NCBI GenBank assembly: GCA_964035545.1
Contig: OZ037770.1
Span: 12,948,642 to 13,012,641, forward strand
DNA length: 64,000 nt
Source: Bugula neritina
Lineage: Eukaryota > Animalia > Bryozoa
Direction: 5' to 3'
The notes below the pieces were generated by a model. It was not told where the DNA came from. It saw only the letters and a list, made by a program, of their open reading frames with translations, and ran no database searches. Below are positions 2,657-64,000 of the stretch, in pieces. The stretch's first letter is position 1. Each line of letters begins with the position of its first letter. The translations under genes were made by a program, and so were the position numbers.

Positions 2657-31993
<29,337 letters not shown>

Positions 31994-39172: not shown

Positions 39173-40183
39173 ATGGACGAGCTAGACAGTTCAGCAAAAA
39201 CTGAAGTAGAAGAAAGATCGGAAGATGATGAGAGAACTGGTAGCGAAGCTCCTGCTAATAAAAAGTCAAAACATTCGTACAATTCTCAAATGTATAATTA
39301 TGAGATGATAGAAGATATGAAAATAGAACTGACATTAGAGGTATTTCATTTTGCTTGATATCATGTAGCTAAATGTGTTTTGATAATCAGTTGGCCTTAA
39401 AATGGTCCTCCTTATTTGGGCTAAAATATCAGTAAAATATTTTGAATTGTTTTTTTGTAAATACTGCTATTAGACTGAGAGTAGATACTATTAGACTGAG
39501 AGTAGATACTATTAGACTGAGAGTAGATACTATTAGACTGAGAGTAGATACTATTAGACTGAGAGTAGATACTATTAGACTGAGAGTAGATACTATTAGA
39601 CTGAGAGTAGATACTATTAGACTGAGAGTAGATACTATTAGACTGAGAGTAGATACTATTAGACTGAGAGTAGATACTATTAGACTGAGAGTAGACACTA
39701 TTAGACTGAGAGTAGATACTATTAGACTGAGAGTAGATACTATTAGACTGAGAGTAGATACTATTAGACTGAGAGTAGATACTATTAGACTGAGAGTAGA
39801 CACTATTAGACTGAGAGTAGATACTATTAGACTGAGAGTAGATACTATTAGACTGAGAGTAGATACTATTAGACTGAGAGTAAATACTATTAGACTGAGA
39901 GTAGATACTATTAGACTGAGAGTAAATACTATTAGACTGAGAGTAAATATCTGTTATTCAGATTGAGAATTGCAAGAATCAGATCGGAGTCCTGACCAGC
40001 GCTCTGAGAGATAAAATAGTCCGACTGTCACGGACTGAGAACAAGACTGAGGTTAATTTAGGTGCCGTGTGTAGTTTAGAGATGCAGTGCTCTTCTATAG
40101 CGTATGCCAGAGCCATGTACATTATCAAACTCAGAGAAAAAGAGCAGCAGTTACTGGGGCTGAGGTCATACGTGCTGACCTAG
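39173..40183 (+). CDS. Putative small unrecognised protein, 2 coding exons (39173-39340, 39962-40183), about 129 aa, acidic N-terminus plus probable coiled coil
   Basis: ATG 39173 downstream of an acceptor-like ttacatag; donor TTAGAG|gtattt (phase 0); acceptor ttattcag|ATT followed by 73 open codons (IENCKNQIGVLTSALRDKIVRL...YIIKLREKEQQLLGLRSYVLT*). Both exons are less AT-rich than their flanks. Confidence 0.6.
39467..39949. repeat. 21-bp minisatellite x23 (CTATTAGACTGAGAGTAGATA)
   Basis: Nearly perfect units; explains ORFs 39429-39803 and 39442-39966. Confidence 0.97.
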
Positions 40184-42513: not shown

Positions 42514-43557
42514 TTAACTTTCGCTTGAAACTGAAAGGCTCACTGTCTTTAGGCTGGGAATTTCAGTAGAGGAGCTATATACTTGGATACTGGGGTCTGC
42601 CAGTCGGTTTGCTGGTTGGCAACTTCGACAGCATTTGAAGATCTTCCAACCAAATAAAGCACGTCTGAACTTTGACCCAGAAATACAATATATTAGGAAT
42701 GTGCTGGCAACTCCTAAGTATTGTATCGCATAGCATACTGATCGGAATAGCTTCGATTTTGGGTCATTGTTGCCTACTAGTTGTACGATGGACACTGGCA
42801 GTGTTGTCACTACAAATTGTATGTTAACGGCTGTTAGCATTAGTGTCATGGATCTTCTCGTGTTCACAAGGGTTCTGTTTTTGTGTTCAGACTTGGTTCT
42901 GGTCAAAGAGTGGCGAGTTGCAATGATAAGCACAACATTGCTGATTATTATGATAAAGGCTGGCAGTATGGAGAAACTGATCAGATCAAATACAGACCAG
43001 ATAGACCAGGCTGGTGAAGCTTCCAATTCGCGGCATCCGTGCTTAAAGTCCAAGATAAGCACAACAGAACTATTTAGTCCCAAACATACTAACAGCTCTA
43101 CACTCACTATAATCAGCCCCTTCTTCCAATTCAGATTATTTGAACCACAACATTCAGTGTTCCAAACATGTTTGGCTATTTGACAAGTACGGTCCAAAGC
43201 TATAGTGGCTTGGATCCATGCTACGTATTGTAAAGCGGTATATTTTAGTATGACTAGAAGGGCACAGCTCGGTTCTAAGTACCCCGGGAGCTTCCATATT
43301 GGAACACCAGTGTACAGTGTGAGTAGACCGGCTAGTGATAGTGCTACTATATACACTCCAAATGTCTGAATTCGGAAAGACTTTTTAGTGAGTATAACTA
43401 ACAAAGAGAGAATATGGCCTATTGTCCCAGTTAACAAAATAAATGCACCGCCATACATCCGAAAGTCTCTTGAAATGCATTCTTGGTCTGTAGGATCGTA
43501 GTCGGGGTGGTGTTTGTCACAAATGTTAGCGTAGTTGGGTGGATCCGTAACATTCAT
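42514..43557 (-). CDS. Class A (rhodopsin-like) GPCR, paralog 1, about 347 aa; peptide-receptor-like (FMRFamide/GPR139-like) orphan
   Basis: 7 hydrophobic segments, ALDR at end of TM3, FVVTTLP in TM6, FLIYCISGSKFR at TM7/helix 8, N-terminal NVT sequon. Start placed at MNVT because paralog homology begins there and an acceptor (atttag) lies at 43565-43566. Confidence 0.9.
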   Translation of the reverse strand: MNVTDPPNYANICDKHHPDYDPTDQECISRDFRMYGGAFILLTGTIGHILSLLVILTKKSFRIQTFGVYIVALSLAGLLTLYTGVPIWKLPGYLEPSCALLVILKYTALQYVAWIQATIALDRTCQIAKHVWNTECCGSNNLNWKKGLIIVSVELLVCLGLNSSVVLILDFKHGCRELEASPAWSIWSVFDLISFSILPAFIIIISNVVLIIATRHSLTRTKSEHKNRTLVNTRRSMTLMLTAVNIQFVVTTLPVSIVQLVGNNDPKSKLFRSVCYAIQYLGVASTFLIYCISGSKFRRALFGWKIFKCCRSCQPANRLADPSIQVYSSSTEIPSLKTVSLSVSSES

Positions 43558-44596
43558 TCTGTCTCTAAATATACAAAAGAAATTACACACTAAATGTTCA
43601 TAATATGACAACTCTTCATGTCTATAGAACATGATGCAATATAATAATTTTTAGGCTCAACTATGCTGGATGTTAGTAAGTGGCAAGAATCAATTTCCAC
43701 TATAAAATCTTTATCTAAAGTAAGTTTAGACAAATGGACCACCTTCATTAAATTAATTTTATATTTTAAGTATACTACTAAATAGCCTATTTGTTACTTA
43801 GCAGTATGTATAGCCTGCGTTTCAAAGACTCAAGTTGATCAATATACGCATTGTTGGGACTAAGACTAACAAATGACAAAAGTTAGCATGAAGCAGTAGT
43901 AGTTCTAGATCAGCATGTAAGAATAAAAGATAAGCAATTATTATAATACCAAAATATCCATTAAAGAACAGTAAAGTCATTTAAAGAAAATACAACTAGT
44001 CACTTGAGTTTTACTTCTGTTGGCAACATATTGGTAACTTTACAGTTAATTTTTCATGCATACGGTTTTGCAAGAGAAATTGCACTTCATGTGGTCCTAA
44101 CTTGTCATTACTCTGTTTTTACATAGCTTTAATAATAAACAGAAATTGCAGACATAAATAAATTATAAATTACTGAAGATAAATCTACAAAGGAGCATCA
44201 AACAAATTGACTATTGACTATAGTAACTGAAAACTCTGAAATTCAAGGTTGTTTTAGAGTTTAGACAGATTATTCATAACAGTAAAAATCTAAATGAAAA
44301 TAACCGCCACATGGTTCATCATACAGTATAATGATATTACTCTCACTCTGATTCATTGACTTTATATTATTTATTGAGAATATATTGCCTTATTAGCTTG
44401 ATTTCTTGTGTCTTATTTATATAGTCATAATTTTTAATAATTTGTAGGCATTTATAAAGGTGGAGATCATTTACTGGTTTATTAAGTTGAATCCTTTATA
44501 ATATAAAACACAGTATTTATGTAGGTACAATAAGTGGACAGAGCTTACAATATAAACAACTATCGCATAATATTATGACATATATATAATTATATG

Positions 44597-44661: not shown

Positions 44662-46742
44662 AAATATAAGTGTATTTATTCTCAGTGAGGATGTACTTAA
44701 GTTGTAAAAGTAATTAACTTATATATAATCAATATGTGTTTTGTTGTTGAACTCTTTATCATATCTTATACTCATAATTTATATTGCATGATTTAAATAG
44801 CAATCAATGTACCATTTGATATTAAGGTCAAAGTAATACTTAGTTCAATAAAGTTATCAACCTTACACGCTATACTATACCAGATATATAAAGTACTAAT
44901 AGCTCATATAAACTACTATATTAAATTGTGTTGATCTTACAATAAATACTTATCTATTATATTGCAAGCACATTGGCAAATTGCCAATTTTCTTAATTTA
45001 GCATTTGTGTATATTTGAAATATAAATTGTACTAGAGGATATGTGAGTTTTTCATTTTAATTAGAGTAAGGTGGATATAGTGATGGTGGGATATCTTAAG
45101 AGAAATGATTTCTCAACACGTTATTCTATGAACGTGAATGTATTGTTTTATAGTGTTATATAAATTTTATTAGTTTTGTTTCGGAAATCCTAAAGCAACT
45201 TTCATTTATGGAATTTTTATGAGTGCACTTATTTGAAAAAGTGCACAGTCAGTTTTTGCAAATTAGAAGTTTAAGTATAATTTAATCGATTTAACTCCAC
45301 AAAGGTGCAGACGCAAATTCTGAAATAGAATAATTAATGAATTTTTATGCAATATGTTCCCAGGAGATGCTTCAGTCCTCAATAACATGTTTGAAACATG
45401 ATTTATGTAATATTCCCTTGCTCAGAATAGTTAATATGTTATGCAATATTTTTCACATGCAATAAAACTCTTTGAAAAAATTATTGATTGGTTGCATAGA
45501 AAAGCAATTCTGTATAAGTAGTTCAGTGAGGTGTTTCAAAAAGATGAAAATACTAATTCATATTATTGAAGCATATTAATAACTTTCCATGCTTTCATTA
45601 TATGTATTAAGTCTGACGCTTTTTCTTAGCTGTTTTGTTATTACTATATCAAAGCTATTTCTTGGATAAATTCTATACGATGTATATAAGCAATCAGACA
45701 ATGTTTCATTCTTTAATCTCACTTGGACAATAAAAGTAAACTAACAGAGTCCATCTTGGCTTTTTGATGAATACAGCCATGCACTCAATGACTTTCTGAG
45801 TTAACATAAATAAGTACAGAAAACAACATGTGCCACACAAACGTAAACATAAACACAATGTAGTCAAACAACAACCTGGGCATTTAGTATTGACTCTCAC
45901 AAACGATTCTTTCAATATTTCACATACAATGTTGAAGAGTATTATTTAGTCCTTTATAATAGTTTATACAGTTGAGACAGATTGCAATGATGATGGTGTA
46001 GTTGAGATTATAATTTGATATTGAGTTTTCATAATGTAATAAATAAGCTCTCAACTTTTTGCAATACATCTTCACAAATACATAATCTATAAGGATTAAC
46101 TGAGTATGTATAAATTTATACATTATAATGTAAGGCAATAACCTCATAAATTCTCATTTGATTAAACCCGATATTTTTAGGTGATAATTTTTAAAAAAGA
46201 TGCCACGAGTCATAATAAATAACATATTAAAGTAAAGTATTTCAACCCACGTCCTCCTATTTCCTTTATAATAACAAGTAAAGTCATCTTAAAGCTGGAG
46301 ATATCATCAAAACAAAACATATATCATATTTTCACAAAATTAACTTAAAAAAGGAAAGGAAATGATATTGCAATGTGAATATTACAGCTGTTGAAAACAT
46401 GCAGTAAGTCTCTAAAATACTGAAGTATCCATCTTATAAATGTTGACAACAGTGGGTAGATATATTAGCAAATCACTACTACTTACGTTTCTTTCAACTT
46501 TCCAAGTAAATAAACTATTTCTCACCTTTCAACAAACAGTTGTAGTTCATGATGTCAATTATTTTTCCAGCATAAAGTCACATTTTTATTAAAACCAGTT
46601 GCAAAGTTGTTTTAAGCATATATCTTATCAAGATGGCTACACTAACTGAGAAGGTCTTGAATGGTTAATTTCCATATTTCATTGCAATTTATATAGACTA
46701 TGTCTAACATATCCTGCTCTTCTGGATCACATTAATAAATAG

Positions 46743-46765
46743 GTTACCATGGTTACCATGGAAAC
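46743..46765. promoter_or_regulatory. RFX X-box upstream of GPCR paralog 1 (GTTACCATGGAAAC, overlapped by GTTACCATGGTTAC)
   Basis: Matches consensus GTTNCCATGGNAAC; same homologous context as 56214 and 63297. Confidence 0.7.
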
Positions 46766-48098
46766 CCAGCTTAGTAAGTAACTATCTAATACCTGAAATT
46801 ATAGAAATGCTAATTAAAGTACTGCTAACCTCAAGTACTAGCTAGAATTGCTTTGGAACCACAAATCAACAATGCCTGCAACATTTGTCATGTTAGGCAA
46901 TACCACATGTTTATTCCACTAACAACTATCACACTGCAAACTTAGTAGAACTAGTAGCAATATATATTAATAAGTCATTAAGTTGAACAGCTGTATGGGC
47001 TTAATATTATAAATTTACTTTCTTGGCCATTATCAACATTATATAAAATTAACTATTTCATTAGCTATGATAAATTGTAAAAAACACAAGTTTAATAAAT
47101 ATTCCTTCACAGTAACTACAATTTTAATTAAAAGTGCCACAAACATTTAATTTGGTAACATGCATAAATCATTTCCAGTCTCCAAAATCATAAGCCTAAG
47201 AATTTCAATGCCAAATTAACTGTTTCTGATGACAATGATTTATTTTTGACATCTATTTTTGAAATGAGGGTTTAAGTCTAAGCTAATGATCTATCCAGTT
47301 GAATGTTATAGTTGTGGGAATGCAAAGTTTTAATTTGGCAAGCAGGTAAAACAAGCTGTCAAAGACTGCAATGCCATATGATATTATATTATAAATGTTC
47401 AAGTGGATAATTCTCAAAAATATCTTGACCAGCTGTTCACTATACTCACTGTGCCTTTTATAAACAAAACATATACATCTATTGTCAGCTAGACTTTGAA
47501 CACTTACACTGTGGTCAACAAGGAATTACATGAATAAATGCCAGTTAGTGGTGTATTCATGTGCCATCATGAATGACCTAGAAAAAGAGTTCGTCTGCAT
47601 GCACCATGAATTAGTGCTAAATTAATATTTTAGTGTATATTGGAATTCACAACAAAAATTTATTTCCTTGCTATATGTATGAAAAAACATGAATGATCAT
47701 TTGTCCAGAAATTAATGCAGCTTTTGATTCACATAAAGTTTGCATAATGAAACACAACTGCATGAGTACTAAATACTACTGCAGGTACTACTTGGCACTT
47801 ACTGCTGTGTATAACATCAATTGTACTATGTCTACTCAGTGCAACTATATATTGGTACTATTGAGTACGACTGTTGGTGTCACTGCTACTAGTCAATACT
47901 ACTATTGGTACTAGGGAGTATAACTACTATTGGTACTAGTGAATACTACTATTGGTACAAGATATTAGTGACTGCTATTGGTATAAAGCATGTTATTCAA
48001 ACAAACTCCAATCATAGATTATGATCTGGTGTTCCTTAAACCATGACTTTACTTCAACATTGAATTGTCTTTCACAAAAGTGTATAAGTCACACTCAC

Positions 48099-48240
48099 CT
48101 GGCATGTAGAAGTATGAGCTGTTAGACGTTATCAATTCTGTTGTATGAGAGATTATAACCACACTGCATATCTCTACAGTATGAGTGACTCCATACGTAA
48201 TATTAGCATCTATCATATTGAATGAGACGCTTCATCAACA
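48099..48240 (-). other. Putative 5'-UTR exon of GPCR paralog 1 (5' end approximate)
   Basis: Ends ATACTTCTACATGCCAG|gtgagt; homologous to 57274-57350; CCAAT motifs near 48301 and 48332. Confidence 0.5.
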
Positions 48241-51200
48241 CTGCATATCTCTACAGTAACTCTAATTGTAACACTTATATAAATTCTGAGGTATCAATGA
48301 CCAATCAAGTGCTAGAAAAGATTACCATTGGCCAATCAGCTACATCGATATGCATATTACAGAGAACACATTATAGGTGTAGTAGAATTGTGCAAATTAG
48401 CCATTAATTTTATGTGCAAATTAATTTATAAATTTACCAAAATAACATTTGAGTTGGGTAAACATTTTTGTCCTATAGATATGCATACTATATATAGAGC
48501 TGGCTGTACATTCATATATTCAAAGTGGTCATTATTTTTTAAATTCAATCGACTTTAAACCCTCCCTATACTCTGCGTATTCATTGCATTTACAAGTTGA
48601 TATTTGCTATAAGGGGTAGATTTCCCTGATCATCCGTAGCAAGCAAGATGGATGAAAACGAAAACAGCCTACTCTACTATATTGTATTTTATTTCTGTAC
48701 TTCTTATTTACATATTTAAGTCTCTCGCACTCTGACACTGCATTCTATTAATCCTGATTAATTGTTTATTTGACACACTTAAAGCTTCTGTCTTTGTCTA
48801 TTTTAATTCCCATGCACCACCATAGCAACAGCAATACCTCCCAATAAAAATATCTTATATTTTCCAATATTACTCCTGTAATATTTACACCAAAGATACT
48901 ATTTTTAGCATCTAATACTTAGCTCAAAGTTTTATTGTAACAATTTCTTATACTAGAATACTAAACTTTCTCTGAAGTTTTAAAAAGCAAACTTTTGGTC
49001 ACTTCATTTACTGAAATTCAAATGGTCGATTTAAGTTGAAATAGAAATCATAACTCTTTCTGATTAAGATAAATGATTATTGCCATATATTGCTCAGTGA
49101 TCTCTCTTATAAAATTTGTTAATTTATTTTAGGCTGATTCGGCAGAAGAATACAGATCTCAAATCAGATTTGGACAATTATCCAATCAACATCAGCGTGG
49201 CACTTTTGGTTTGAAAGGTTGTTGTTATTATAAACACTGGTCTTTTATTATTAAAAAATGCAGATTTCATAATAGGAGCTCTTTGCTAAACTGAACTATA
49301 TTATTGATCTCTAGGGAGTATTATAGTAGCAGACGGCACCAAGGTAACTGTAGAGCTCAGGGTGCATAAATTACAGCAATTTCTGCTGTTCTAGATCCAA
49401 TCATAGCGAGCAGTATATATATTAATTCCACTTGAGTGACTCAAAATAATGACGTTGAATTTTATTTCCCATTATTTTTGTCTGCCAGGTGTCATAAGTT
49501 TAAGCTATTAGCTTTCGTAATTTTTCACATTATTCCACGAATTAAGCTGTAACTACATTGCATTTAAAATTACTGAATCTAATTTGCAATCTACAGCTAG
49601 TATATAACTGTTATTAGTGAGTAGAGATATTGTAAAGGCTGTGATTGGCTTTTGAGTTCATAATGTTATTTTTTAATTTACAAATTCACAAATTAAATTT
49701 AGCTACCTGTGGTAAGAAACCAAATTATAATCTGACTCATCTTTTCTTTAGCACTAAACTGGATAAATATCATATAATTGATTTTGTTTGCAAATGCTTT
49801 TTAATTTAATTTTCTTTGGAGATGAGTAATTGCCCTTGCACCCATAGCAAGCTACAGAAGTTATCCTCTCACCAGTGAGACTTTGGTTGTAGATGAAATA
49901 TATGTAACATAAACCCATATAAATTCGAGAAATATAAACAGAAAATTTGTTTGTGTTTTAAATAATGATACACAAATAGGCAACTTGCCAAAAATCTTGC
50001 TGCCTAAATGATCTTGCTGTCATTCACTACAGGTTTAGTCAAATTACATGCTAATAGATGTCACTGCTTGTTAAGGTGGGAACGGTTCGGGAGGTATATA
50101 TATCTTGTTAGAAATTCTCTTATATTTGAATTTTATGTAGTTTTGAAATTTTCAAACCATAAGAAATTTCTTGCGATTATCAAAAATTAGGCCTAAATTT
50201 ACTCCAGAAAAATAATTTGTGAAACGGTATTAGCTACAGATATAGAAGTTGTGCTCTCCTTCAGTGAGATTATTTCTCCATAACTAGTCCATATATAGAA
50301 ATGGAGTGTAGGCTTTATTAAGTAGCACATGTATTTTGTAAGCAACCGAAAATTTTTAAATATTTACAGCTTGATATATTAACTTATTACAGACTAGTTT
50401 TTAGGCTACATTAGTCATATTCCCTGAACTCTGAGAGGCCTAAGGATCTACACCCTAAACAAGCAGTTTACTTAAACTGAAAAATTAAGCCAAATGTTGC
50501 TAAACATGTAAAATCTGCTAAATGGTTTTCTGCTGTCTCAGTGAAACTTTCCTCTTACTTTTTATAGAGAATCTAAGTCAAGTTTGTTCTGTTTGGAATT
50601 GACCCGCCTGCATGTTAGTTTCGGCAGTGAAACCACTTGAACAGCTTATTCTCTGACGCTCTAGCAAAGAGTAGAAGATCAGGCAGGTAAGAGTGCTCGC
50701 TCTAGCACTAAAAAGGTTTTTGATTGTAATATATAATCAAAATTCTACCTTCGTGCACCCTTGCAGCTCCATTAACTTTATTTGTTACTTCCTATGGCCA
50801 AATATGCTTACAGGAGAGTTTTTATTTAGAGGTCATTGACCCTGCTTGTAATTAATGTGAGTACTATAGCTAGAGATCAAGTTAGTGTGCTGCTAATGTA
50901 TGATTGTTGTTATCTGATATAAATAATATATTGATTATTAAGAGAATATCATTAACATTATAGTGTGCAATTTTGTGTACACATTCTAGCATGCATATAC
51001 ATGTTCTAGTATGTTCTATAACATATATTACGCAATTACTGTCAGTTAGTTATATAAGTGAAACACCCATTACAATTAGTGCAGTACTAATTATAGTTAA
51101 TTCTTTAGAAATCACAAATATGTACTCATAATGCTGAGCAGGCCTGTTAAGCTATTCCCCATATAATTATTAGAAGGTGTAATTTGTGTTTTAGTCCAAC

Positions 51201-52311
51201 ATTCTATTCTGAGCTATATGATGTGTTTACAACCTTCACTAAGTAGGTGAATAAACACTTGTATCATGTATCCTTTTACTTGATTTATTATATTGTAATT
51301 AGAAACATGTTAACCTACAAACTTCCCTTTCCATGATGCTAAATTTTATAGGTTAGTATGAATGTTAATAGTTATATATACTGCACATAGTAGCCATTGT
51401 TTTTACTAATGCACCATGTTTTTCTTATATCACATAGGTTTCATTCTAAAAATATTTATTATACTTTAAGCTCTACCCACTCAATAGAATTATATTATTG
51501 TTAAAAGTGCCATTTCAGCTTCTTCTGATAGAAAAAAAGTATCTAAAAGCTGGCGTATAGTTGGCCCATGCGTCACAAATTTGAATCAACTTCAGTTAAT
51601 AAAAGTAAGCAACAGGTTATAAACTCTCCTCTTGAATTTGTTTTTAGGAGGTAGATTTACGTCTTTTATTTCAATGCAAAGAAGAACAACCATTCCTTGA
51701 GTGGACTAATTACAGATTGTCTTTAGCTTTATTGTGGACACAACTTCTCTATACCTCATTTAAACATGCCTTGTTACTACTATGCCTTGTTTGTTTCAAA
51801 TGGAATATTTTTTTATTGAATATTAAGCGCAAGAAAAAAATACTATATTAATATCATAACTACAATGAACTAGTCATGGGTTGAAGTATAATTAATAGTA
51901 TTTTAGTTTGTTGATAACTAATGGCTTCAGCAAGTTTTCTCCTATTTATGCATCGCATATCTAAAAGAGAAGAGTTTCTTTGTAAATTGTCCATCTTTGG
52001 CCATCAGAAGACAATTTAGGAAAGCATTCTTTTATTACTTTATAATCACATGTCTGTAGTAATGAATTATACTTTTGTATGAGTGAACTCAGTCATTGAC
52101 CCTGTATTAATAATACAATGATTAAAGCTCAATTTTTATGGTTTGTTAGTAGCATGTTAGTGTAAACATAAACTGCATTTGACTATAGCTTTCACACACA
52201 TAATATTTATATGAATATATACAGGTGTATTTTGGCTAAAGAAACTACAAATCAAAATTTATGGAAAAGTGTTAATTTCACAACATCTAAGAAGTGAAAT
52301 ACTTTGAGCTG

Positions 52312-53412
52312 TTAAGTCTCAGAGCATATATCATTAGAAATCAAAGTTTTCATGACTGGAGTCTTGCTAGTTTTTCGGCAGTGCAAACCAGTTGGAGAGT
52401 TGTTTACTTTGGTTTTGGAATTTGTCCCTTGGGCTGTTAGCTGGCGTTTACGAAAGCATTTGAAGATCTTCCATTCAAATAAAGCACTTCTAAACTTTGA
52501 CCCAGAAATACAGTAGATCACAAATGTGTTAGCAACTCCTAAATATTGTATTGCATAGCATACTGAGCGGAACAATTTTGTTTTAGGATTATCATTGTCC
52601 AACAATTGTACAATAGACACTGGCAGTGTTGTCACTACGAATAGTATATTGACTGCTGTTAGCATTAAGGTCATTGATCTTCTAGTTTTCACAAGAGTTT
52701 TGTTTTGATGTTCAGACTTGATCCTGGTCAAAGAGTGGCGAGTTGTAATGATAAGCACAACATTGCTAATTATTATGATAACAGCTGGCAGTATGGAGAA
52801 ACTGATCAGATCAAATACAGACCAGATAGACCAGGCTGGTGATGCCTGTAGATAGATACATCCATTTGCATAGTCCAAGACAAGCACCACAGAACTATTT
52901 AGTCCCAGACATACTAGCAACTCTACACTCACTATAATCAGTCCCTTCTTCCAATTCAGATTATTTGAACCGCAATGTTCAGTGTTCCAAACATGTTTGG
53001 CCACTTGACAAGTGCGATCAAGGGCTATAGTAGCTTGGATCCACGCTACGTATTGTAAGGAGGCGTGTGTCAATATCACGTGAAAGATGCAACCCATCTT
53101 TAAGGATTTTCGAAGGTTGAACTGCCACAATGTAAATCCTGGAATAGTCCAATCTAGAACACCCGTGTACAGTGTTAGTAGACCGGCTAGTGATAGTGCT
53201 ACTATATACACTCCAAATGTCTGAATTCGAAAAGACTTGTTAGTAAGTATAACTAACAGAGAGAGAATATGACCTATTGTTCCAGTTACCAGAATAACCG
53301 CACCACCATACATCCGAAGGTCCAGAATTATGCATTCTTGGTCTGTAGGGTCGTAGTCCGGGTGGTATTTGTCACAAATGTTAGCATAGTTGGGTGGATC
53401 TGTAACATTCAT
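52312..53412 (-). CDS. Class A GPCR, paralog 2, about 366 aa
   Basis: Same motifs as paralog 1; ECL1 10 aa longer; different C-tail; acceptor tttatag at 53418-53419. Confidence 0.9.
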   Translation of the reverse strand: MNVTDPPNYANICDKYHPDYDPTDQECIILDLRMYGGAVILVTGTIGHILSLLVILTNKSFRIQTFGVYIVALSLAGLLTLYTGVLDWTIPGFTLWQFNLRKSLKMGCIFHVILTHASLQYVAWIQATIALDRTCQVAKHVWNTEHCGSNNLNWKKGLIIVSVELLVCLGLNSSVVLVLDYANGCIYLQASPAWSIWSVFDLISFSILPAVIIIISNVVLIITTRHSLTRIKSEHQNKTLVKTRRSMTLMLTAVNILFVVTTLPVSIVQLLDNDNPKTKLFRSVCYAIQYLGVANTFVIYCISGSKFRSALFEWKIFKCFRKRQLTAQGTNSKTKVNNSPTGLHCRKTSKTPVMKTLISNDICSET

Positions 53413-53608
53413 TCTGTCTATAAACATACAAAAGAGCTTGTAAATCAACCTTTCATGGTGTGACAACTCAGCATCTCTTCAAGATCTGGTATTTTAATAT
53501 AATAATCTGTAGGCTCAATTGCTGGATCTTGTTGGAAAAGATGGCAGGGCCAGTCCTAGCTATTAAATATTTGTCACAAGCAAATCTAGATTAACTATTA
53601 CTTCTACT

Positions 53609-55367
53609 CAGGGATGTAGTGGCAAAAATGTTCTAGGCCATACTCTCAGGCCGGGGGTCCAGGGGGCCGCCCAGGCCCCCGGCGGGGTCCGGGGCAGCGC
53701 CCCGGCCGCCGAAGCTCTCAGAGCTCTTCTGATGCAAATTTATGCAATTTAAAGCCATTGTGAATTCTAATTCTTCTGAAAAAATCTGTGTTTAAATGTG
53801 CACCTCACTATTATTTTCATACAATAGCAGCTACATGACGACTGGGCATTGCTGCAAACTATATAAATATTCAGTATTGTCCCATACTTGTTGACTGTAG
53901 TTTTAAATGTAAAGTCTTACTCAACTGCAGTTAGGTTTGTTCTGACATGCACCAATTACAAACTGTACAGAAAAATTGCTGAAGATCTCAAAAAGGATGG
54001 AAGGATAGAGACAGGTAACAAGTGCTCTCCAAATGCAACCTGATTATTTTATTAATAACTAATAGACTGACGTGCCCAGAAAAAGAATAATAGATCAGAA
54101 GAGAGGCAGATTGCAAATCAGAAAATGTGTGTTTGTTATTTATAAAGAGCAATTTGAATTGATAACTCATTGGCAAGCAGAAATTGGTTAAAAACCTAAT
54201 TGGAGTTTATTGGAGTACTAGTCTAATCCATAAGGAGATACCACCACACCTTCTAACACACAATAAAGCACGCACCCAAGAAAAGTATGTTAACTTGGTT
54301 TTAAAATAAAACCCCTGAACTTTCACTAGACACATCAAGGAAACATACCCCAAATGAAAAAAATTGACAGGCTTAATACGTGTTAACCTAGAAGATGATT
54401 AAATATAAAGCCAGATGTTAGTTAGTACAATCAAACATAAACGGTTACTTATGGTGGTGTACAGTTTGCAAAACCTTATTGCATTGATAATTAACATGCA
54501 ATAACGCTAGGTTTTTGAGCAAAATGTGGACATTATAGTACCTGTAGACCTCAGTGATAAATTTTTGGTAACCTCTCCTACACAACTGGTACTGTTTCTT
54601 GAAGACATTTTGATTTTATTTCTGGATTTCATGTTGGTTTTTTAAAATTCCATTGCTTATTGACAAAATACAAGTCCACACAAGATAGATAAGGGCAACC
54701 TTCTAGCTGTCACTGCCTAATTGTGCTAGAATAAAAATTTAAAAACTATGTTGTAGATCTTCCTGTTTCTCAGAGCACCTGCTTTTTCGAGTTTTCAATA
54801 TTTTTTTTGCAAAGTTATAGGCAAAACACTACTCATTTTGGCCAATTTTATCTGAAAGTTTATTTTTCAAAATGTGCCAAATATCTCAGCAGGAAAGTAT
54901 GGTATTGGAATAGAACAAACGCTGTTGGAAACCTGAGAAATTTATGCATAGCAAATTTTTTGATTCCTTTCAATAGCCTTCATAGATTTTCTACAAATTA
55001 GTGATTTACACACTGGAATGAAATATTTTTTCCTTAGCAATCACCAATGCACAGCACTTCGCGCTTCAGTGAACCCCTAAAGATGAGAAAACGGAATGTT
55101 GATAGCTCTCATTATTCATAGTGTAATCTCAGTCTAAACAATCACAAGTAGGCAACACGCATGCCACCCACATAGCATCAACATAACAAGAACTTAAACT
55201 AGATTGTGAGCGAAATTTATGATATTCTCAGTGAAGATGCCCCAACTATCCTGTGCACTAATCATCTTTCAAAAATATTATGCCCATACGGGCGTATGGC
55301 CTAGAGCAGTCTATTTTCTTCTAGGCCATACGGCGTATGGGACCGTATGGGTACCACTACATCCCTG
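53609..55367. mobile_element. Non-autonomous hAT element, 1759 bp
   Basis: Perfect 14-bp TIR CAGGGATGTAGTGG / CCACTACATCCCTG; perfect 8-bp TSD CTTCTACT (53601-53608, 55368-55375); subterminal CTAGGCCATAC repeats; GC-rich segment 53650-53712; no transposase ORF. Confidence 0.93.
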
Positions 55368-56213
55368 CTTCTACTAGAATAACATAATTATAATGGTATT
55401 GCTATGAAATGAAATTCAATTAACATAATATGCAACTGTTCACAAGATGTTTTAACTTCCTCATATTAAACATTTCAATATGCAGAACATAGGAATTTTT
55501 TTGTTTTCTCAATTAAAAATTTGAATTGAGCTTGTTTCACATTAGCTCACACTGTTCTATTGTGCAATAAATGTAGTATAGCAGCTACACGTGTTAAGTA
55601 ATACTTCTATCTAGCTACACTATTATCAACAGGTAAGAGTAAATGTCCAGGCTTTTTAAAAAAGCAGCTATAGTCTATTAAAACCAAATTTCCTGAGCTG
55701 TTAAATCTGAAACTGTATTTAACTGATATTTAAATAGATGTTGGATGCTTTAATGCTGCATAAACATAATCAGGCTTCCTTTTACTTTTCCTATTATTCT
55801 TCTAAGACACTTTAGAATTTTTTTTTGACCACCAGCAAGACATAAACTTACTATTAAACTTTGTTTTCATCTAAATATGTTGGTAGATCATTGGGGGCAA
55901 ACATTAATAATAGTGGGCTTATTTTGAGGGAGAAAGAAAGCCTAAAATAAAAACTGAAGTTATGCCCCTCCCCATTGCCTGCACACTCGGAGGTTAAGAA
56001 AATTCTTAAAGAGCCTAATCCAGAAAATCACTTGATGCCGCGCAAAGTTTGGAGTCACTGAGTACAGTAGCTTGAAGTTGAGTGTTGGTTTGTGCAAGTA
56101 TAAATAAATAATGCACTCGGTGACCCCAAACTTGGTGCTGCGTCTGGCGAATTCCTATGTATATCTAGAAAGTCCAGATCACTAGGTCTACGTAAGGTCA
56201 TATTAAAGGATCT

Positions 56214-56227
56214 GTTGCCATGGAAAC
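56214..56227. promoter_or_regulatory. RFX X-box upstream of GPCR paralog 2 (GTTGCCATGGAAAC)
   Basis: Consensus X-box in conserved paralogous context. Confidence 0.72.
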
Positions 56228-56750
56228 CCAATGTGAAAGTAGAACTAGGTAACGCCTGTGAAAGTAACTAACTAATCTCTACAACCCTAGTAATTAGTGA
56301 TGCACAAATTAGAGCATTAGTAAACTAGTTAGAGGCTATAATACATGGAATCTAGGTTATGTTAAGGCTTTAGAAGTGCAACGTGTTGAATACAATAACA
56401 ACTATTACAGTAAACTTGTTACAGCTATAAACATTATACTGATAGTAATTATGTATTTATTAGCTGAGCCTATAATTATATAAAATTACTTTCCCTGCCG
56501 ATGCAAATGTACAAATACAGAAAGTAATTTTTTATGACTTACATCCGCAATTATAACTGCAGTTCAAAGTGTCATCAAGGTTTATTTTTTAATTCAAAAA
56601 TTTGAATGTCAACTAAACTATTCATGATGGTAGTGATTCATTTTTCACACATCTATTTTTGGAGTAAAATTTTTAACCTAAGCTAAAAATCTATTTAGTC
56701 ACATACAGCTGTGAAAATGCAAAGTGTGAATTATAGTATATATAAGATGT

Positions 56751-56945
56751 GGCCCTTTAGTGTAATGGTAGGGCGCCTACGAACAAGTTGGAGGTCTCGG
56801 GTTCAAATCCCAGTCAGAGCAAAAGTTTTACATAAAACAGCCTACTTAATATCAACTTGTTTATTTTCAGCAGCGCTTCTTCACTAAAAGCCGGGCCTCA
56901 CACTCCTGAGAATCACACAAAACTCGTGTGACAATTTTTGTAGTT
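56751..56945 (+). mobile_element. tRNA-derived SINE, family B (or tRNA pseudogene)
   Basis: A box TAGTGTAATGG, B box GGTTCAAATCC with T-arm CGGGTTCAAATCCC; no proper acceptor stem; interrupts sequence homologous to the 47.3-kb region. 3' end approximate. Confidence 0.62.
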
Positions 56946-57273
56946 ATCTTCTCTACCAAGTACTACCGAGAGCTACTATTTCTACTATTAAGTGCTACTA
57001 TTAGTACTACTGAGTATGACTATTAATTGCTGCTGTAATTAAGTACTATACTATTGATACTGTTGATAATACAGAGTAGTATAGTAGGCTACTACGTATA
57101 CTATTATAGGATGAACATTCACTATCCATCAGCAAAATACTAAATTATAGCAACAGTTGTTAATATAAGGCTCAGTTAAAAACTATTGCTGCTGTTTTTA
57201 ACAAAGAAGATCTTCTTATCCGCTAAATTTGAAAATTAAATTTTCTCTTCTAAAAAGAAAGAATTACACTGAC

Positions 57274-57350
57274 CTGGTATGTAGAAGTATAGACTGTTGG
57301 ATATTATTATTTCTGTTGAACAAGACTCTTTAATAACACTTCGTATCTAT
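57274..57350 (-). other. Putative 5'-UTR exon of GPCR paralog 2 (5' end approximate)
   Basis: Ends ATACTTCTACATACCAG|gtcagt; homologous to the 48099 exon; CCAAT near 57420. Confidence 0.5.
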
Positions 57351-57957
57351 CAGCAACTCCATTTGTTGCACTGTTACATAGGAGGTCAGTGAAACTAATG
57401 ACCCATCAATATTCTGCAACCAATCAACAACCTCTAAAAGTTATTACTAGCAGCAGACACCATGAGAGTAGCTGTGGAGCTCAGAGTACACAAATTACAG
57501 TAAATTTGTTAACTTTTGCCAATTCCTCCTACCTATCCACCTTCCAATTGTACAAACGGAATAATAAATGATTCTGCTTTAGTGACACAAAAAATAAAAT
57601 TGCATTTATTTTTATTCAACCTTTATGCTGCAAACGTTTAGTTTTTTGTTTGGCATTCCATAAATTAAACTGCTACTACAATGTATTATATTTTACTTAT
57701 TCATGAGCCTATAACTAGTGTAGAAGTTTTATTAGTAATTGTTCAAGGTATCATTTAAGAATTCGATTAGTTTTTGAGTACTTATATTTTCTTTTCAGTG
57801 TCAAGTGTAACGCACTTCCCATGATGAGACAGTGTATGAGTTGTCCTTTCTATTTTATAGTGAGAAGATAACTAATAACACAAGTATAAAGTGCTTGATT
57901 TTGTATCAAGCGTTTCGGTTTCGATTAATAATTCCTGACATAAAGTGTATAATGACT

Positions 57958-58290
57958 GGTGTCCGGTGAAAATGGCACCGGTAAAAATGGCACAGGTAAT
58001 AATGGCACAGGTAATAATGGCACAAATGGCAAAGTAGGTAAAAATGGCACATTTTCAATATTAGGTTTTTGGGGTGAGAGGTTTGGGGTTTAGAATGAGG
58101 GGTTTAGGTTTGGGGATAGGGGTTTGAGTTTGGGGTTTCAAGTGGGGGTTTGGAGTTGGGCAAATTCAACATCAGTGTGCCATTTTTACGTACTTTGCCA
58201 CTTGTGCCATCATTACCTGTGCCATTAGTACCTGGGCTATTTTTACCGTGCCATCTTTACCTGTGCCAATTCTACCAGTGCATATTTTAC
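57958..58290. mobile_element. Foldback MITE with long, internally repetitive TIRs
   Basis: Left arm (GGTAA(A/T)AATGGCACA)n is mirrored by right arm (TGTGCCAT..TTACC)n; central GGGGTTT-like repeats. Confidence 0.82.
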
Positions 58291-58676
58291 CCAAAATTGT
58301 AATGATTATGTTAGAAGAATAACGCTCGACTTTTTATATAGATACTGTAATCGATCACTGTTTCCTATGATAAAACAACAATCGTAACTATTTTTAATTT
58401 TTGTGGGTGAAGAATTTGCACTATCAACCTAGGATCTTGTCAGCTTCCTTCATTCAACTTATCACGCAGAAAACAAGATTCAAATTTAGCCGCTCAACTA
58501 CTATGCGTCCAAGTTAGCATTATATTAATATATATGCGAAACACATTTATAAGTCAACAAAGGTTTAAGTCGGGTTTTATCAAATGTTATATAATGTATT
58601 AGTGAATTTATACATAAAAAAACCAAAAAATATTTTCAAGTGAAAAAATGTATAAATATTATCTGTCATGAAAAAT

Positions 58677-59708
58677 TCAACTTTGAGTTGAAACCAAAAT
58701 GCTCACCGTCTTTGCGTTATAAATTTCAGTGGAGGAATGGTAAGCCTTATTGCTGGAACCTGCACATATAGAGCTAAAAAAGCATTTGAAGATCTTCCAA
58801 CCAAATAAAGCTTGCCTAAACTTTGACCCAGAAATGCAATATATTACGAATGTGTTCGCAACTCCCAAGTATTGTATGGCGTAGCATACTGATCGGAGTA
58901 CTTTTGTTTTAGGGTTATCATTGTCAATCAACTGTACGACCGAGACTGGCAATGTTGTCACTACAAATTGTATATTGACTGCTGTTAACATTAAGGTCAT
59001 GGATCTTCTCGTCTTCACAAGAGTTTTATTTTTGTTCTCAGACTTGATCCTGGTCAAAGAGTGGCGAGTTGCGAAGATAAGCACAACATTGCTTATTATT
59101 ATGATAAAGGCTGGCAGTATGGAGAAACTGATCAGATCAAATACAGACCAGATAGACCAGGCTGGTGATGCTTGTAATTGTTTACACCCATTTTTATAAT
59201 CCAAGGCAAGAACTACAGAACTGTTTAGTCCCAGACATACTAACAGCTCTACACTCACTATAATCAGCCCCTTCTTCCAATTCAGATTATTTGAACCGCA
59301 ATGTTCAGTGTTCCAAACATGTTTGGCTATTTGAAAAGTACGATCTAAGGCTATAGTAGCTTGAATCCACGCTACGTATTGTAAAGCCGTAGATTTTAAT
59401 ATAACTAGAAGGACACAACCCGATTTGAAATATTCTGGAATGGTCCAGTGTAAAACACCTGTGTATAGTGTTAGTAAGCCGGCTAGTGATAGTGCTACTA
59501 TATACACTCCAAATGTCTGAATTCGAAATGACCTTTTCGTGAGTATAACTAACAGAGAGAGAAAGTGGCCTATTGTTCCAGTTGCGAGAATAACTGAACC
59601 ACCATACAATCGAAGGTTTTGTGTAACACATTCTTGATCTGTAGGGTCATAGTCCTGGTGGTGTTTGTCACAAATGTCAGCATAGTTGGGTGGATTCGTA
59701 ACATTCAT
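58677..59708 (-). CDS. Class A GPCR, paralog 3, about 343 aa
   Basis: Same motifs; acceptor catttag just upstream of the ATG. The ORF-track N-terminal extension runs through intron and MITE sequence. Confidence 0.9.
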   Translation of the reverse strand: MNVTNPPNYADICDKHHQDYDPTDQECVTQNLRLYGGSVILATGTIGHFLSLLVILTKRSFRIQTFGVYIVALSLAGLLTLYTGVLHWTIPEYFKSGCVLLVILKSTALQYVAWIQATIALDRTFQIAKHVWNTEHCGSNNLNWKKGLIIVSVELLVCLGLNSSVVLALDYKNGCKQLQASPAWSIWSVFDLISFSILPAFIIIISNVVLIFATRHSLTRIKSENKNKTLVKTRRSMTLMLTAVNIQFVVTTLPVSVVQLIDNDNPKTKVLRSVCYAIQYLGVANTFVIYCISGSKFRQALFGWKIFKCFFSSICAGSSNKAYHSSTEIYNAKTVSILVSTQS

Positions 59709-59757
59709 TCTGTCTCTAAATGTACAACAGAGTGTTAAGTTCATGGTATGATGACGT

Positions 59758-60047
59758 ACCCCCCTAGACACACTTTGCCGCACCGTAGGCCGCAATGTAA
59801 AATGTAGGATATTTTCAATGTGTCCAGGCCTAAGTTCTCAAAGTCCGCTATTGGGTACGATCTATGACATCTCATTGGACATTTATATCTAATGAGTTGG
59901 CGCGAACTCCTTTCCATCCAATAGGAGCCAGACAAAACCTTTTTTTAATCAAGCAGTGCTTGGTTCTGACGTACTTTCGTACCATTTGTAAAAATGGCTG
60001 ACGTTTTACGTTAGGGCCTATGATACGGCAAAGTGTGTCTAGGGGGT
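59758..60047. mobile_element. MITE inserted about 40 bp upstream of the GPCR paralog 3 splice acceptor
   Basis: TIR CCCCCTAGACACACTTTGCCG / CGGCAAAGTGTGTCTAGGGGG, imperfect extension to about 50 bp; absent from the homologous intron of paralogs 1 and 2. Confidence 0.85.
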
Positions 60048-60733
60048 CAAACATGACTACATGAGCTCATCCAGTAATTTAAATTAGAACTGTGATTCCA
60101 GCTGTACCACATAAGTTCAACTACTCTAGACATTTTTATATGAGATGGCAGGAACCAATCTCCGATATCAAATATTTATTAAAAATAAATCTAGTTTGAT
60201 ATACTATATAACTTTTATTAATTTTATTCTTTAAACAGTTTTTTGAAAGACATGTTGGACCTAATAAACTATGTTGAATTTAGAGAAAAAATTTGTTGTT
60301 TCTATTTTGTTATATGGTATAAACAATTGCAAAAATAGTATAATAAAGGCTACAGCTGACTTAAACTTAGAGCTTTTCCTCAAATTAGTGACTATAAGTG
60401 TGCAGCTGAAAAAAGCTGACAGAGTGTTGGGTTGTCTACTCTGTAAATGATGCTAACCAATATTAGTCCGAGTTATTTATTCTGCACGAGAGTCAAACAT
60501 GAGCTATATAGGCATACTGATGGCTGTAAAAAGCAAGTACTTCCTATACATTGCCGTAGTTATAGCAACATTTACAAATAAGTGATATTTATATAATGTT
60601 ACTTTAACGGCTGTTTACCAAGTAGCAGTAAATAGATTTATTTATTTTTCCCAGTTCATGTTTATTACCCATGCCTTTTTTATGTTCTTATGGAACTTTT
60701 GGTTATAAGTATCATAGCCTACTCAGTTAACAT

Positions 60734-61197
60734 CAGGGTTGGGGTCCATTACATATGAATGTAATTAATTGCAATTACAATTACATGGCAATGTAATTAA
60801 TTACAATTACAATTACTTTTGTTCTTACAAGAGACCAATAGAAGTTATATAATCTTCCTTCTGAGGTCCAATTATCAAAGGCAATTTTGACAACAGAAAA
60901 CCTTCTTTGTTCTCAACAGTAACCAATAAGGTGATAAATATGACATGGAATTATTCTAAACTTTTTATTGAACAGTAGGCAAGACAGGAAAGATATGAAT
61001 TTTATTATGATTTAAAAATTTGAAGTAATTATTATGTAATTATAAAGTAATTGTAAAATTCAATTACATAAACAATGTAATTAATTACAATTACAATTAA
61101 ATTTTTATATATCAATTACAAATCATATTCAATTACTTGAAAAAATGTAATTATTTACAACCAATTACAATTAAAATTTACAATTACCTCAACCCTA
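60734..61197. mobile_element. hAT-type MITE, 464 bp, with AATTAC subterminal repeats
   Basis: TIR CAGGGTTGGGGT / ACCTCAACCCTA; perfect 8-bp TSD GTTAACAT (60726-60733, 61198-61205). Confidence 0.9.
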
Positions 61198-61621
61198 GTT
61201 AACATATAATTATAATTCAATTTATGATTGTGATTAGACATTACAGTGATTATTAGCATTTATTATATATTTACAAGTTTATCACAAAATAATGAGTCTC
61301 TGCAAATTATAACATATTAGATAACAGAACTTTATAGGGTAATCTAAATTGAATGTGAATGGTTTGTTAATGATGCTACTAATCATTTTGAACTTTAATT
61401 TGAAATAAACATAGAAATTAAAGATAAAGCACATGCATCTAGTTTAGATGGTATGCTGCTAGCATAATTCAATAATAGCTATATGTGAATGTATGAGCAA
61501 TTTGAATCTGAAGCTGCACTGCTTATGCATGTTTGTGAATGGTAATCAGACTAATGGTGTAATATTAGTTTACAACGTCATGTCATATAGCAGTACTGTT
61601 CAACCTACTTGCTAGTTTGAA

Positions 61622-61790
61622 GTGAAGCAGGTGTAGTGGTTAAATTGAGACCGGCAGTTTGAATGGTTTAGTGATACTAGGAAGGCCACACAGTCATAAT
61701 TGCTCCTGTGACATGTCAGAAAAGACCTTAAAACAAACTTTTCTGTCAGATGCTCTCTCGAGATAGCATATGACTATAAACTTGTGTAAG
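61622..61790 (+). mobile_element. SINE family A-related, diverged copy
   Basis: GGTGTAGTGGTT head; CAGTCATAATTGCTCCTGTG is the exact reverse complement of 63583-63602; tail TGACTATAAACTTGTGTAAG. Confidence 0.6.
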
Positions 61791-62710
61791 ATTTTTATTT
61801 CTTAGCCTGATTTTACATCTTAAATTATCTTTATTGCATTTGAAAGCGGTTATTTTCATTTTCTCATAATTAATATTTCAATAGACAAAAAACTTCTCTC
61901 CTTTGGATAGTTTATAGTTGTATTTGTTTTCTTAATCCTCAGTGTATATAGCTTGTGCTTCAAAGTTTAAAACTGGGCTAGTGATTGGTTTGTGTATTGC
62001 AGGAGCAAGAAGAAATTACTGGCTGCCGCTGTTTTCATGTAAACTAATCATTAATTTGAGGTCATGCAGGTGTAGTAGCAGAGAAATTGAGATAGCATAA
62101 GTTCATAAATTTTCTTTTAAGACTTTGGTTGAAATCCTCATGAGAACATAGCTTTTTTGCTACATTTGTAATTTAGAACACAGGCTTTTCGAAGTTTCAC
62201 CATTACTGCACCTATAATCTCATATTATTTACTAGTAAACCTCTGCAGATAAGATGCAACACACAGCAGTCACAATCTAAATTCTATATCATATGCAGTA
62301 TATATTGTATAATAATAATATTAGTCTCAGTTTGTTACCTTTGGCTCTCCAGTTTGTTGATACAAGTCTTTAGAGATACAGAGAGATGTGTTTACAGTAG
62401 CTTCATATAAACATTCCTTGTGTCTTTCAATTCAGAGTAATCTGGCTTGTCACCTTTTGATCCTGTCAGTCTAAAAACAGTAGCAGTTTATAGCAAGTAT
62501 AAATTCTTCCTCATTAGTAGCCAAAAGGAAATATAAATCATTTAAATAAACTTAATGCATTATTTTACTATACTTACTGCATATTCTTAACTAAGAAATA
62601 CCAATGTTAAAGTAGCTTAAGCTTCCTATAAGAGACGATACATTTAAATATCAGTTTAAATACTTGCAAAGTTTTTTACTGATCTGACTCAATAAAGGAT
62701 GGAATAAAAA

Positions 62711-62840
62711 GCTAACGTGAGTTCACAGTTGCCATCCCTGCAGTGAGAATCTCTGGTAGAAAAAAATATTTTTAAACCGGCCAAGGACTTATTCTAACGG
62801 GAGGCATAAGCAATCATGACTAGATATATTGCTTGATATT
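62711..62840 (-). mobile_element. SINE family A, truncated diverged copy
   Basis: GGCCAAGGACTTATTC...AGCAATCATGACTAGAT colinear with the 15.5-kb and 63.5-kb copies. Confidence 0.55.
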
Positions 62841-63296
62841 ACATATTTTTTCTTAGAATATATGTTGCTGTGTTTTGAGTAGACTGAAAGAGGAGATTCA
62901 AAATGCTTCACTTGATTAAAGATGTTGAAAAGTTGGAGGTTTTTCTAAGAAAATGTTAGCAACATGCGGAACTGTTCAACTGCATCAAACCAGAACTTAT
63001 GAGCCGCAGAGAGACAAAAATTTACATCTCTGTACCTAACAGAATTAATGAGTTAATAATTTGATTAGAATGATTAATTAAAATTACTATTATGACAGTT
63101 CCATCACTAGATGACTACTTGCCTACCATGCAGTATAAGTTATTTATGAATTCATTAGTATTTTGGCTGAGCAAAGTAACACCAGTATAGGAATTGGTGA
63201 ATTGCTAATCTTTATAAAACTTTTTTGTAATTCACAGCAGCTACATCATAACATGTCTAGCTCACTGAGTTTCTACTGGGTCATATGAGCAGATCT

Positions 63297-63310
63297 GTTC
63301 CCATGGAAAC
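63297..63310. promoter_or_regulatory. RFX X-box upstream of GPCR paralog 3 (GTTCCCATGGAAAC)
   Basis: Consensus X-box in conserved paralogous context (GGTCATAT...GATCTGTT-CCATGGAAACC). Confidence 0.7.
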
Positions 63311-63492
63311 CATCAATAATATCTACTAACTCTAGCTTAACAATTAATGTATATTAGAAGATTATAACTTCAGATATCATTAAACTCAGAAGCTACAAAG
63401 CAATAATATATTATGTTGAGCAATAATGCATCTGTAATGTGCTAACAGCTATTATAAAAACCTATAGTTATAACTATAACGTAACAATATAC

Positions 63493-63704
63493 TCACGCAA
63501 GTTTACAGTCACTATCCCGTGAGAAACCCCTGATAGAAAGGGTTTTTGTTAAAGCGGGCTAAGGACTTATATTTAAATGAGGCACAGGAGCAATTATGAC
63601 TGAATGCTTTTCCTAACATCACCAATGGCCTTTGTCAGGGCTTGAACCCATGACCATCGTGTTTACTAGGCAAACGCTCTAACCCCTAGACCACGGCTGC
63701 TCCT
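63493..63704 (-). mobile_element. tRNA-derived SINE, family A, full-length young copy
   Basis: Minus strand begins GGAGCAGCCGTGGTCTAGGGGTTAGAGCG...GGGTTCAAGCCC (A and B boxes); perfect 18-bp TSD TATAACGTAACAATATAC (63475-63492, 63705-63722). Confidence 0.9.
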
Positions 63705-64000
63705 TATAACGTAACAATATACCAAGAAGTAATTATATAGCCATCAACTGCATCAGTAATTATACAATTACTTTCTTTGATATATTATGGTTAAGCTAGT
63801 ATTAAAGTATTACGTAGATCTGCACTGTTTTGTTGACTTGTGGAACTTAGCAAACTATGGTTTGATGCATTTTCCTTAAACGTTATCACTGCAGCTTTCA
63901 CAAGGTCACCAAGGTTTAATTTTGTAACATAAAATTTGGCATGCAAAAGGGAATACAAAAACTTCACTGTCAGATTGACTATTTATGATAGTTATAATGA

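Follow-up and report, generated by a model that had tools for sequence, protein, structure and literature searches.

A conserved RFX-type X-box in the putative 5′ intron of three tandem receptor genes of Bugula neritina

Do three neighboring receptor genes of the bryozoan Bugula neritina share a regulatory site of the type bound by RFX transcription factors, and what might such a site do at genes of this class? We analyzed a window of 64,000 nucleotides (assembly GCA_964035545.1, contig OZ037770.1, positions 12,948,642 to 13,012,641 of the forward strand; the whole stretch is referred to as the window, and positions are counted from its first letter), in which three G protein-coupled receptor (GPCR) genes lie in tandem, each with a match to the X-box consensus GTTNCCATGGNAAC on its 5′ side. 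Comparisons within and between genomes indicate, with good support, that these X-boxes form a conserved cis-element of a kind already known, found here at an unusual class of target, namely receptors. The coding exons and the sites are located as follows.

42514..43557, minus strand: coding exon of GPCR 1, from the conserved ATG (MNVTDPP...) to the stop codon; raw open reading frame (ORF) open to 43632
52312..53412, minus strand: coding exon of GPCR 2, from the conserved ATG to the stop codon; raw ORF 52312-53466
58677..59708, minus strand: coding exon of GPCR 3, from the conserved ATG to the stop codon; raw ORF 58677-59795
46752..46765, no strand assigned: X-box 1, GTTACCATGGAAAC, in the putative intron 1 of GPCR 1
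56214..56227, no strand assigned: X-box 2, GTTGCCATGGAAAC, in the putative intron 1 of GPCR 2
63297..63310, no strand assigned: X-box 3, GTTCCCATGGAAAC, in the putative intron 1 of GPCR 3

Conservation of the 14-mer among paralogs and between species

A pattern search of the window for GTTNCCATGGNAAC returned exactly three matches, at positions 46752, 56214 and 63297, compared with 0.02 expected by chance, and none of 100 shuffled sequences reached this number. These are the 14-mers quoted in the initial annotation of the locus, all of which were present as quoted and vary at position 4 alone, a degenerate position of the consensus. The second near-copy that it had described as overlapping the first site is also real (46743-46756, GTTACCATGGTTAC, with one mismatch to GTTNCCATGGNAAC) and is explained by a 9-bp tandem duplication (GTTACCATG GTTACCATG GAAAC). 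The X-boxes lie 5′ of the receptor ORFs at distances of 3.1, 2.7 and 3.5 kb for units 1, 2 and 3, respectively, and 2.8–3.6 kb from the conserved ATG, in agreement with the placement first proposed for them, a few kilobases 5′ of each coding exon.

We compared the three units with one another by pairwise BLAST, and found that the coding exons share approximately 80% nucleotide identity, whereas the 5′ regions share only short collinear patches of 60–73% identity; the flanks were accordingly described well as recognizably homologous yet heavily diverged. When 400 bp around the site were aligned among the three units, only the X-box formed a solid block. The sequence CCATGGAAACC was the only 11-mer common to all three 5′ regions (5–9 kb each), and no 12-mer was common to them. 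When one variable position was allowed, only two 15-mers showed 14 of 15 positions invariant among the three units, one of which was GTTNCCATGGAAACC. Aligning the three upstream regions, as had been suggested at the outset, thus revealed a motif conserved above its flanks.

Such a similarity might have arisen without any function: the sites might have survived by chance, been homogenized by gene conversion among the paralogs or come from a transposon fragment common to them; the tandem arrangement makes conversion conceivable, and the introns concerned are filled with repeats. However, the flank of X-box 3 matched itself alone in the 216-Mb genome and showed the read depth of single-copy sequence, in contrast to the high-copy repeats in nearby segments of the intron. 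The site accordingly does not belong to a transposon, and such an origin was rejected. Gene conversion was rejected as well, as no conversion tract was found and the flanks diverge right up to the edge of the motif.

We further compared the window with the B. neritina assembly GCA_010799875.2 (contig VXIV02000090.1), which was treated as a related species distinct from that of the window genome and is the one meant by B. neritina hereafter. The layout of this contig is the same as that of the window, with four tandem receptors followed by an Snf7 gene, and it contains exactly three X-boxes, all at the orthologous places. Each matches its counterpart letter for letter, even at the degenerate position, and the 9-bp duplication is present as well; aligned non-coding sequence is approximately 85% identical overall and contains many indels. 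X-box 3 is located within a 44-bp run that is identical between the species (the third longest of 567 in unit 3), and X-box 1 within such a run of 39 bp (the seventh longest of 586 in unit 1). The flanks of unit 2 have been remodeled between the species: they show an insertion of a short interspersed element (SINE) and a TA microsatellite, and on the side of the coding exon their length differs by 2 kb. X-box 2 and its immediate surroundings were retained despite this remodeling.

Changes were counted by parsimony over six sequences (three units from two species, with the 9-bp duplicate removed). The flanks showed 1.39 changes per column, whereas the 14 columns of the motif showed 2 changes against 19.4 expected from the flanks (Poisson P ~8e-7). 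Both substitutions fell at the degenerate N, the 12 specified positions were invariant, and the lowest-scoring 14-column windows all overlapped the motif. The purifying selection postulated in the initial annotation is well supported by these comparisons, in which the site contains the only common 11-mer, is identical in B. neritina and has changed far less than its surroundings. As the motif had also been defined in advance, we regard an origin without function as very improbable.

Position of the X-box within the receptor genes

The other 15-mer of the three-way comparison, CACCTGGYATGTAGAA (at 48097, 57272 and 65081 in extended coordinates), reads on the gene strand as TTCTACATRCCAG/GTGAGT and fits the consensus of a 5′ splice donor; the GTCAGT found in unit 2 is a donor too. 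This signal is kept in all three B. neritina orthologs, so that the donor is conserved in 6/6 genes. An E-box reading of the CCAGGTGAGT block was rejected in favor of a splice donor, as unit 2 of both species has CAGGTC, which fits a donor and not an E-box. Approximately 130–200 bp upstream of the donor is a block with paired CCAAT boxes, of which GPCR 2 has a weaker version at ~57385-57424; in unit 3, no run identical between the species is longer than the block of GPCR 3 (65 bp). Towards the coding exon, conservation among paralogs starts abruptly at a putative 3′ splice acceptor in 4/4 paralogs of the window genome, and the N-terminal extensions of the raw ORFs are, judging from this comparison, unconserved read-through. 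The elements are listed below.

48298..48336, minus strand: putative promoter block of GPCR 1, with the paired CCAAT boxes ATTGGCCAAT and ATTGGTCA
48093..48111, minus strand: putative end of the non-coding exon 1 of GPCR 1 and its donor, TTCTACATGCCAG/GTGAGT; X-box 1334 bp downstream
57268..57286, minus strand: putative end of exon 1 of GPCR 2 and its donor, TTCTACATACCAG/GTCAGT; X-box 1047 bp downstream
L001 ~1077-1095, outside the window: putative end of exon 1 of GPCR 3; X-box 1773 bp downstream of the donor
43558..43580, minus strand: putative 3′ splice acceptor of GPCR 1, ttttgtatatttag/AGACAGA, 7 nucleotides before ATG AAT GTT
53413-53435: the same acceptor junction in GPCR 2
59709-59731: the same acceptor junction in GPCR 3, present also in the fourth paralog

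Together, these elements suggest a gene model consisting of a CCAAT promoter, a short non-coding exon 1, an intron of 3.9–5.4 kb in the 5′ untranslated region (UTR) and a single coding exon, which we consider probable. The X-box would then most likely be located inside the 5′-UTR intron, in its 5′ third, and not at the promoter. The earlier description of the sites as upstream of the genes therefore holds in that they are 5′ of the coding exons, but they most likely lie within intron 1 rather than in a promoter region. A series of smaller conserved blocks in collinear order ends on its 3′ side with the X-box; from the X-box to the acceptor, the intron shows no three-way conservation and is rich in repeats. 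The conserved block at 47198-47391 / 56551-56732 was considered as a possible coding exon and rejected, as it has no frame open in every copy.

The gene strand offers a different view of the palindrome, namely that it is functional but unrelated to RFX, as the binding site of another dimeric factor or as the core of an internal promoter or leader containing an ATG (CCATGG) and a TGA. In all three units, an ORF of 7–10 codons runs from the ATG inside the X-box to the TGA of a semi-conserved ATRTGAYC block approximately 10 bp beyond the motif (46733-46765, 56193-56227 and 63276-63310), and this block and a GG on one side extend the conservation beyond the consensus. However, the constraint mirrors the X-box exactly, with the one variable column coinciding with the degenerate N; the peptides of the micro-ORF are not conserved, and no conserved alternative donor common to all units was found within ~100 bp downstream of the X-box. 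The micro-ORF is probably coincidental, and we judge a function apart from RFX to be unlikely.

Some further features of the introns were observed. A run of 89 bp identical between the window and B. neritina, at 45696-45784, is the longest in the intron of unit 1; it is not common to units 2 and 3 and had no Rfam match. The intron of unit 3 contains repeats of very high copy number at 63460-63819, 62020-62199, 60580-61299 and 59680-60039, with a contig depth of up to ~5e5 compared with ~100 for single-copy sequence. The repeat at 63460-63819 resembles a tRNA-derived SINE (GGTTCGAACCC), and a similar tRNA-like piece is found near 56720-56800; ARAGORN/tRNA and Rfam scans of the window gave no calls.

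Relationships of the receptors

The proteins encoded by GPCR 1, 2 and 3 are 77–78% identical to each other, and all three pass the Pfam 7tm_1 cut-off narrowly (35.9–36.6 bits versus 30.5). Reading the sequences by eye, we found DRT in place of DRY at the end of transmembrane segment (TM) 3 and N-T-F-V-I-Y in place of NPxxY in TM7. The TM7 segment, RSVCYAIQYLGVANTFVIY, contains no lysine by eye, and the receptors are therefore not opsins. A sequence search of the PDB with the receptor yielded no relative at E < 0.01, and the nearest Atlas clusters were all 7tm_1, being a mix of melatonin-, galanin-, prostaglandin- and lysophosphatidic acid-like receptors. On the evidence of these sequences, the receptors are divergent class A (rhodopsin-class) GPCRs, and to call them orphans, as was done initially, is fair. 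The label ‘chemosensory’ is unsupported, its sole backing being matches to the Srw and Sru profiles that fall below the Pfam cut-offs (19.4 versus 22.2 and 21.3 versus 26, respectively).

A word-based protein search returned six relatives, the closest of which were EB796_000690, EB796_000691 and EB796_000692 of B. neritina, with identities to GPCR 1 of 93% (the ortholog), 78% and 81%, respectively. These six matches suggest that the family may be lineage-specific. Searching the window genome with the receptor, we found a fourth tandem paralog (76% identity, intact), three members at 37–43% and one at 26%. The locus resembles the tandem expansions, each specific to a lineage, that rhodopsin-class GPCRs (orphan or chemosensory) show in other invertebrates, with intron-poor coding exons, tandem arrays, weak 7tm_1 similarity and closest relatives found only from Bugula, but the array here is small, with four genes and three or four distant paralogs.

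As for the neighborhood, an exon of the Snf7/CHMP family (36620-37081, minus strand, E 3.5e-33) adjoins the receptor cluster and is syntenic with B. neritina, and a C2H2 zinc-finger exon is located at the start of the window (2657-2950, minus strand). The ORF at 39442-39966 is a tandem repeat with a 21-bp period, as indicated by staggered BLAST matches to B. neritina, and gave low-complexity, coiled-coil-like noise in Pfam.

RFX-dependent regulation of the receptors

We propose that the three 14-mers represent a functional cis-regulatory site that would descend from a single ancestral gene and have been maintained by purifying selection. Its most likely binder would be a dimer of an RFX-family transcription factor. 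The site would most likely serve as an enhancer within the intron, or else as an internal promoter that is unannotated, and would turn on the three receptors in cells positive for RFX. The most plausible cells of this sort in a bryozoan would be ciliated sensory ones, in the larva or the lophophore. Taken as a whole, the proposal that a conserved, RFX-bound intronic enhancer or internal promoter drives three of the four receptors in RFX-positive, probably ciliated sensory, cells has in our estimation an approximately even chance of being correct. Within it, we infer the binding of RFX, the splice between exons 1 and 2, the cell type and any chemosensory role.

The sites resemble the X-boxes of the DAF-19/RFX (xbx) system of Caenorhabditis elegans and Drosophila in being 14-bp imperfect palindromes that fit the same consensus and are conserved above their flanks between species, in a genome that encodes RFX factors: RFX DNA-binding domains (PF02257 above the cut-off) were found at approximately five genomic loci. 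They differ in their location in a putative 5′-UTR intron, far from the ATG, and in targeting receptors. Strict matches to GTTNCCATGGNAAC numbered 251 across the genome, compared with 2 for the reversed pattern and approximately 6 expected from composition. Three of them lie within 22 kb of one another (L016-L018, G000:C2:1.398-1.421 Mb); the flanks of two of these are nearly identical, a further two half-site pairs follow one of the three (GTTCCCATGGTAAC agtagtCCTTGGTAAC agttGTTATGGTGAC), and the nearby ORFs had no Pfam match. The ORFs beside five retrieved X-box sites had no Pfam match. Within the window, the RFX half-site pair also occurs with altered spacers, as perfect matches at 13059-13071 and 23371-23385 (GTAACCTAGCAAC and GTAGCCAGAAGTAAC).

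Several observations weigh against the proposed regulation. The initial annotation stated that all three tandem paralogs carry an X-box, which is correct within the window; however, the cluster has four genes, and the fourth has no such site. This paralog (L001:5010-6077, corresponding to G000:C6:13017651-13018718, minus strand) is located 5 kb past the end of the window and is intact in both species. No X-box was found in 14 kb of its 5′ sequence, even with two mismatches allowed, in 10 kb of that of its B. neritina counterpart, or in a second B. neritina haplotype contig, and nothing of the module of genes 1–3 (promoter, exon 1 and X-box) recurs in the 5′ region of the fourth gene. In both species, one cluster gene thus lacks the site together with the whole 5′ module, and the module is therefore specific to 3/4 cluster genes. 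The distant paralogs (C9 and C4) had no X-box with one mismatch or fewer, and the scan of family members suggested in the initial annotation accordingly found the site neither in the fourth nor in the more distant paralogs.

The genome-wide count also has to be read with caution, as coding paralogs inflate it: the first sites include seven inside the coding sequence of a family of approximately 690 amino acids, and these occurrences of GTTTCCATGGTAAC are therefore false positives for the X-box count. The seven ORF copies (L009-L015, G000:C1:32.86-33.64 Mb) carry GTTTCCATGGTAAC beside a P-loop-like GQTMSGKTS. Among ciliary genes, IFT57 and three B9-domain genes had no X-box with one mismatch or fewer within 6–7 kb of the first matched exon, the first exons of these genes being uncertain; only loose half-site pairs were found, at –389 in IFT57 and –484 in one B9 gene. 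Because these genes lack a strict X-box, the link from motif to cilia is uncalibrated in this genome and rests on other animals. A search of sequencing runs revealed no RNA run with the locus; the matching runs were a ‘symbiont metagenome’ run with short contigs of ~92% identity and a DNA run, which gave repeat depth but no usable transcripts or joints.

The position of the sites is a further point of this kind. Ciliary X-boxes of nematodes and flies are located within a few hundred base pairs of the start codon, at cilium-building genes. Such promoter-proximal placement is not seen here, where 2.8–3.6 kb separate the X-box from the ATG and over 1 kb separates it from the putative exon 1 (1.0–1.8 kb 3′ of the donor). 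RFX paralogs are also known to have non-ciliary functions. Finally, chemoreceptor GPCRs that localize to cilia in C. elegans are largely outside the X-box-enriched set and share an E-box instead (PMC5145144); a receptor cluster controlled by an X-box would therefore be atypical.

The intronic position has precedents in vertebrates. Among Rfx3 peaks from chromatin immunoprecipitation (ChIP) in mouse, 28% are intronic (bioRxiv 10.1101/2024.09.24.614849). In the same study, an Rfx3-bound intronic element of Triobp drove reporter expression in hair cells, and another intronic peak appeared to be repressive (10.1101/2024.09.24.614849). An intronic position is therefore no obstacle to RFX function, and RFX sites in general need not be close to a promoter; the position by itself indicates neither the sign of the effect nor the cell type. 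The receptor X-boxes resemble the Triobp +40 kb hair-cell enhancer in that an RFX motif lies in an intron, distant from the promoter, of a gene that does not serve ciliogenesis and is active in a ciliated sensory cell (for the receptors, by our proposal), but that vertebrate element is characterized by ChIP and reporter assays, whereas the present one is known from comparative sequence.

According to a second interpretation, the sites are true RFX sites used by a non-ciliogenic RFX paralog (RFX1/4/6/7-like), be it an activator or a repressor. In that case, regulation of the receptors would take place in neurons without cilia or in another tissue, or the receptors would be silenced outside one cell type, and the X-box would say nothing about cilia. 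The approximately five RFX loci in the genome are consistent with this idea, as are the ability of RFX factors to activate or repress and to bind intronic sites outside ciliary genes (10.1101/2024.09.24.614849), the atypical position of the sites for a ciliary promoter X-box and the lack of strict X-boxes at the sampled ciliary genes. However, ciliary genes and ciliated sensory neurons are the chief association of the palindromic 14-mer in all invertebrates studied to date (CeNGEN preprint), and nothing at the locus points to another tissue. We consider non-ciliogenic use to be rather unlikely, if less so than a function apart from RFX.

Regarding the biology of the family, the broader idea that a conserved intronic enhancer has wired a bryozoan-restricted subfamily of orphan GPCRs directly into the RFX program of ciliated sensory cells is tentative, and we hold it to be possible but doubtful. 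Bryozoan sensory biology has almost no molecular handles, and Bugula, an important fouling animal, has larvae that select surfaces by means of ciliated sensory organs; an RFX-type site at three orphan receptors offers a specific and inexpensive hypothesis for in situ work. If the receptors prove not to be expressed in ciliated cells, the site would still be a clean example of an ultra-conserved intronic element within saturated paralogous introns. If the idea is correct, the direct targets of RFX in a lophotrochozoan can include receptor genes besides those that build cilia, in contrast to nematodes, where receptor genes are run separately from the cilium-building regulon. The three genes would then be the first molecular candidates for ciliary receptors, e.g. 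receptors of settlement cues, in bryozoan larvae, and the X-box module would provide a ready-made marker of ciliated sensory cells.

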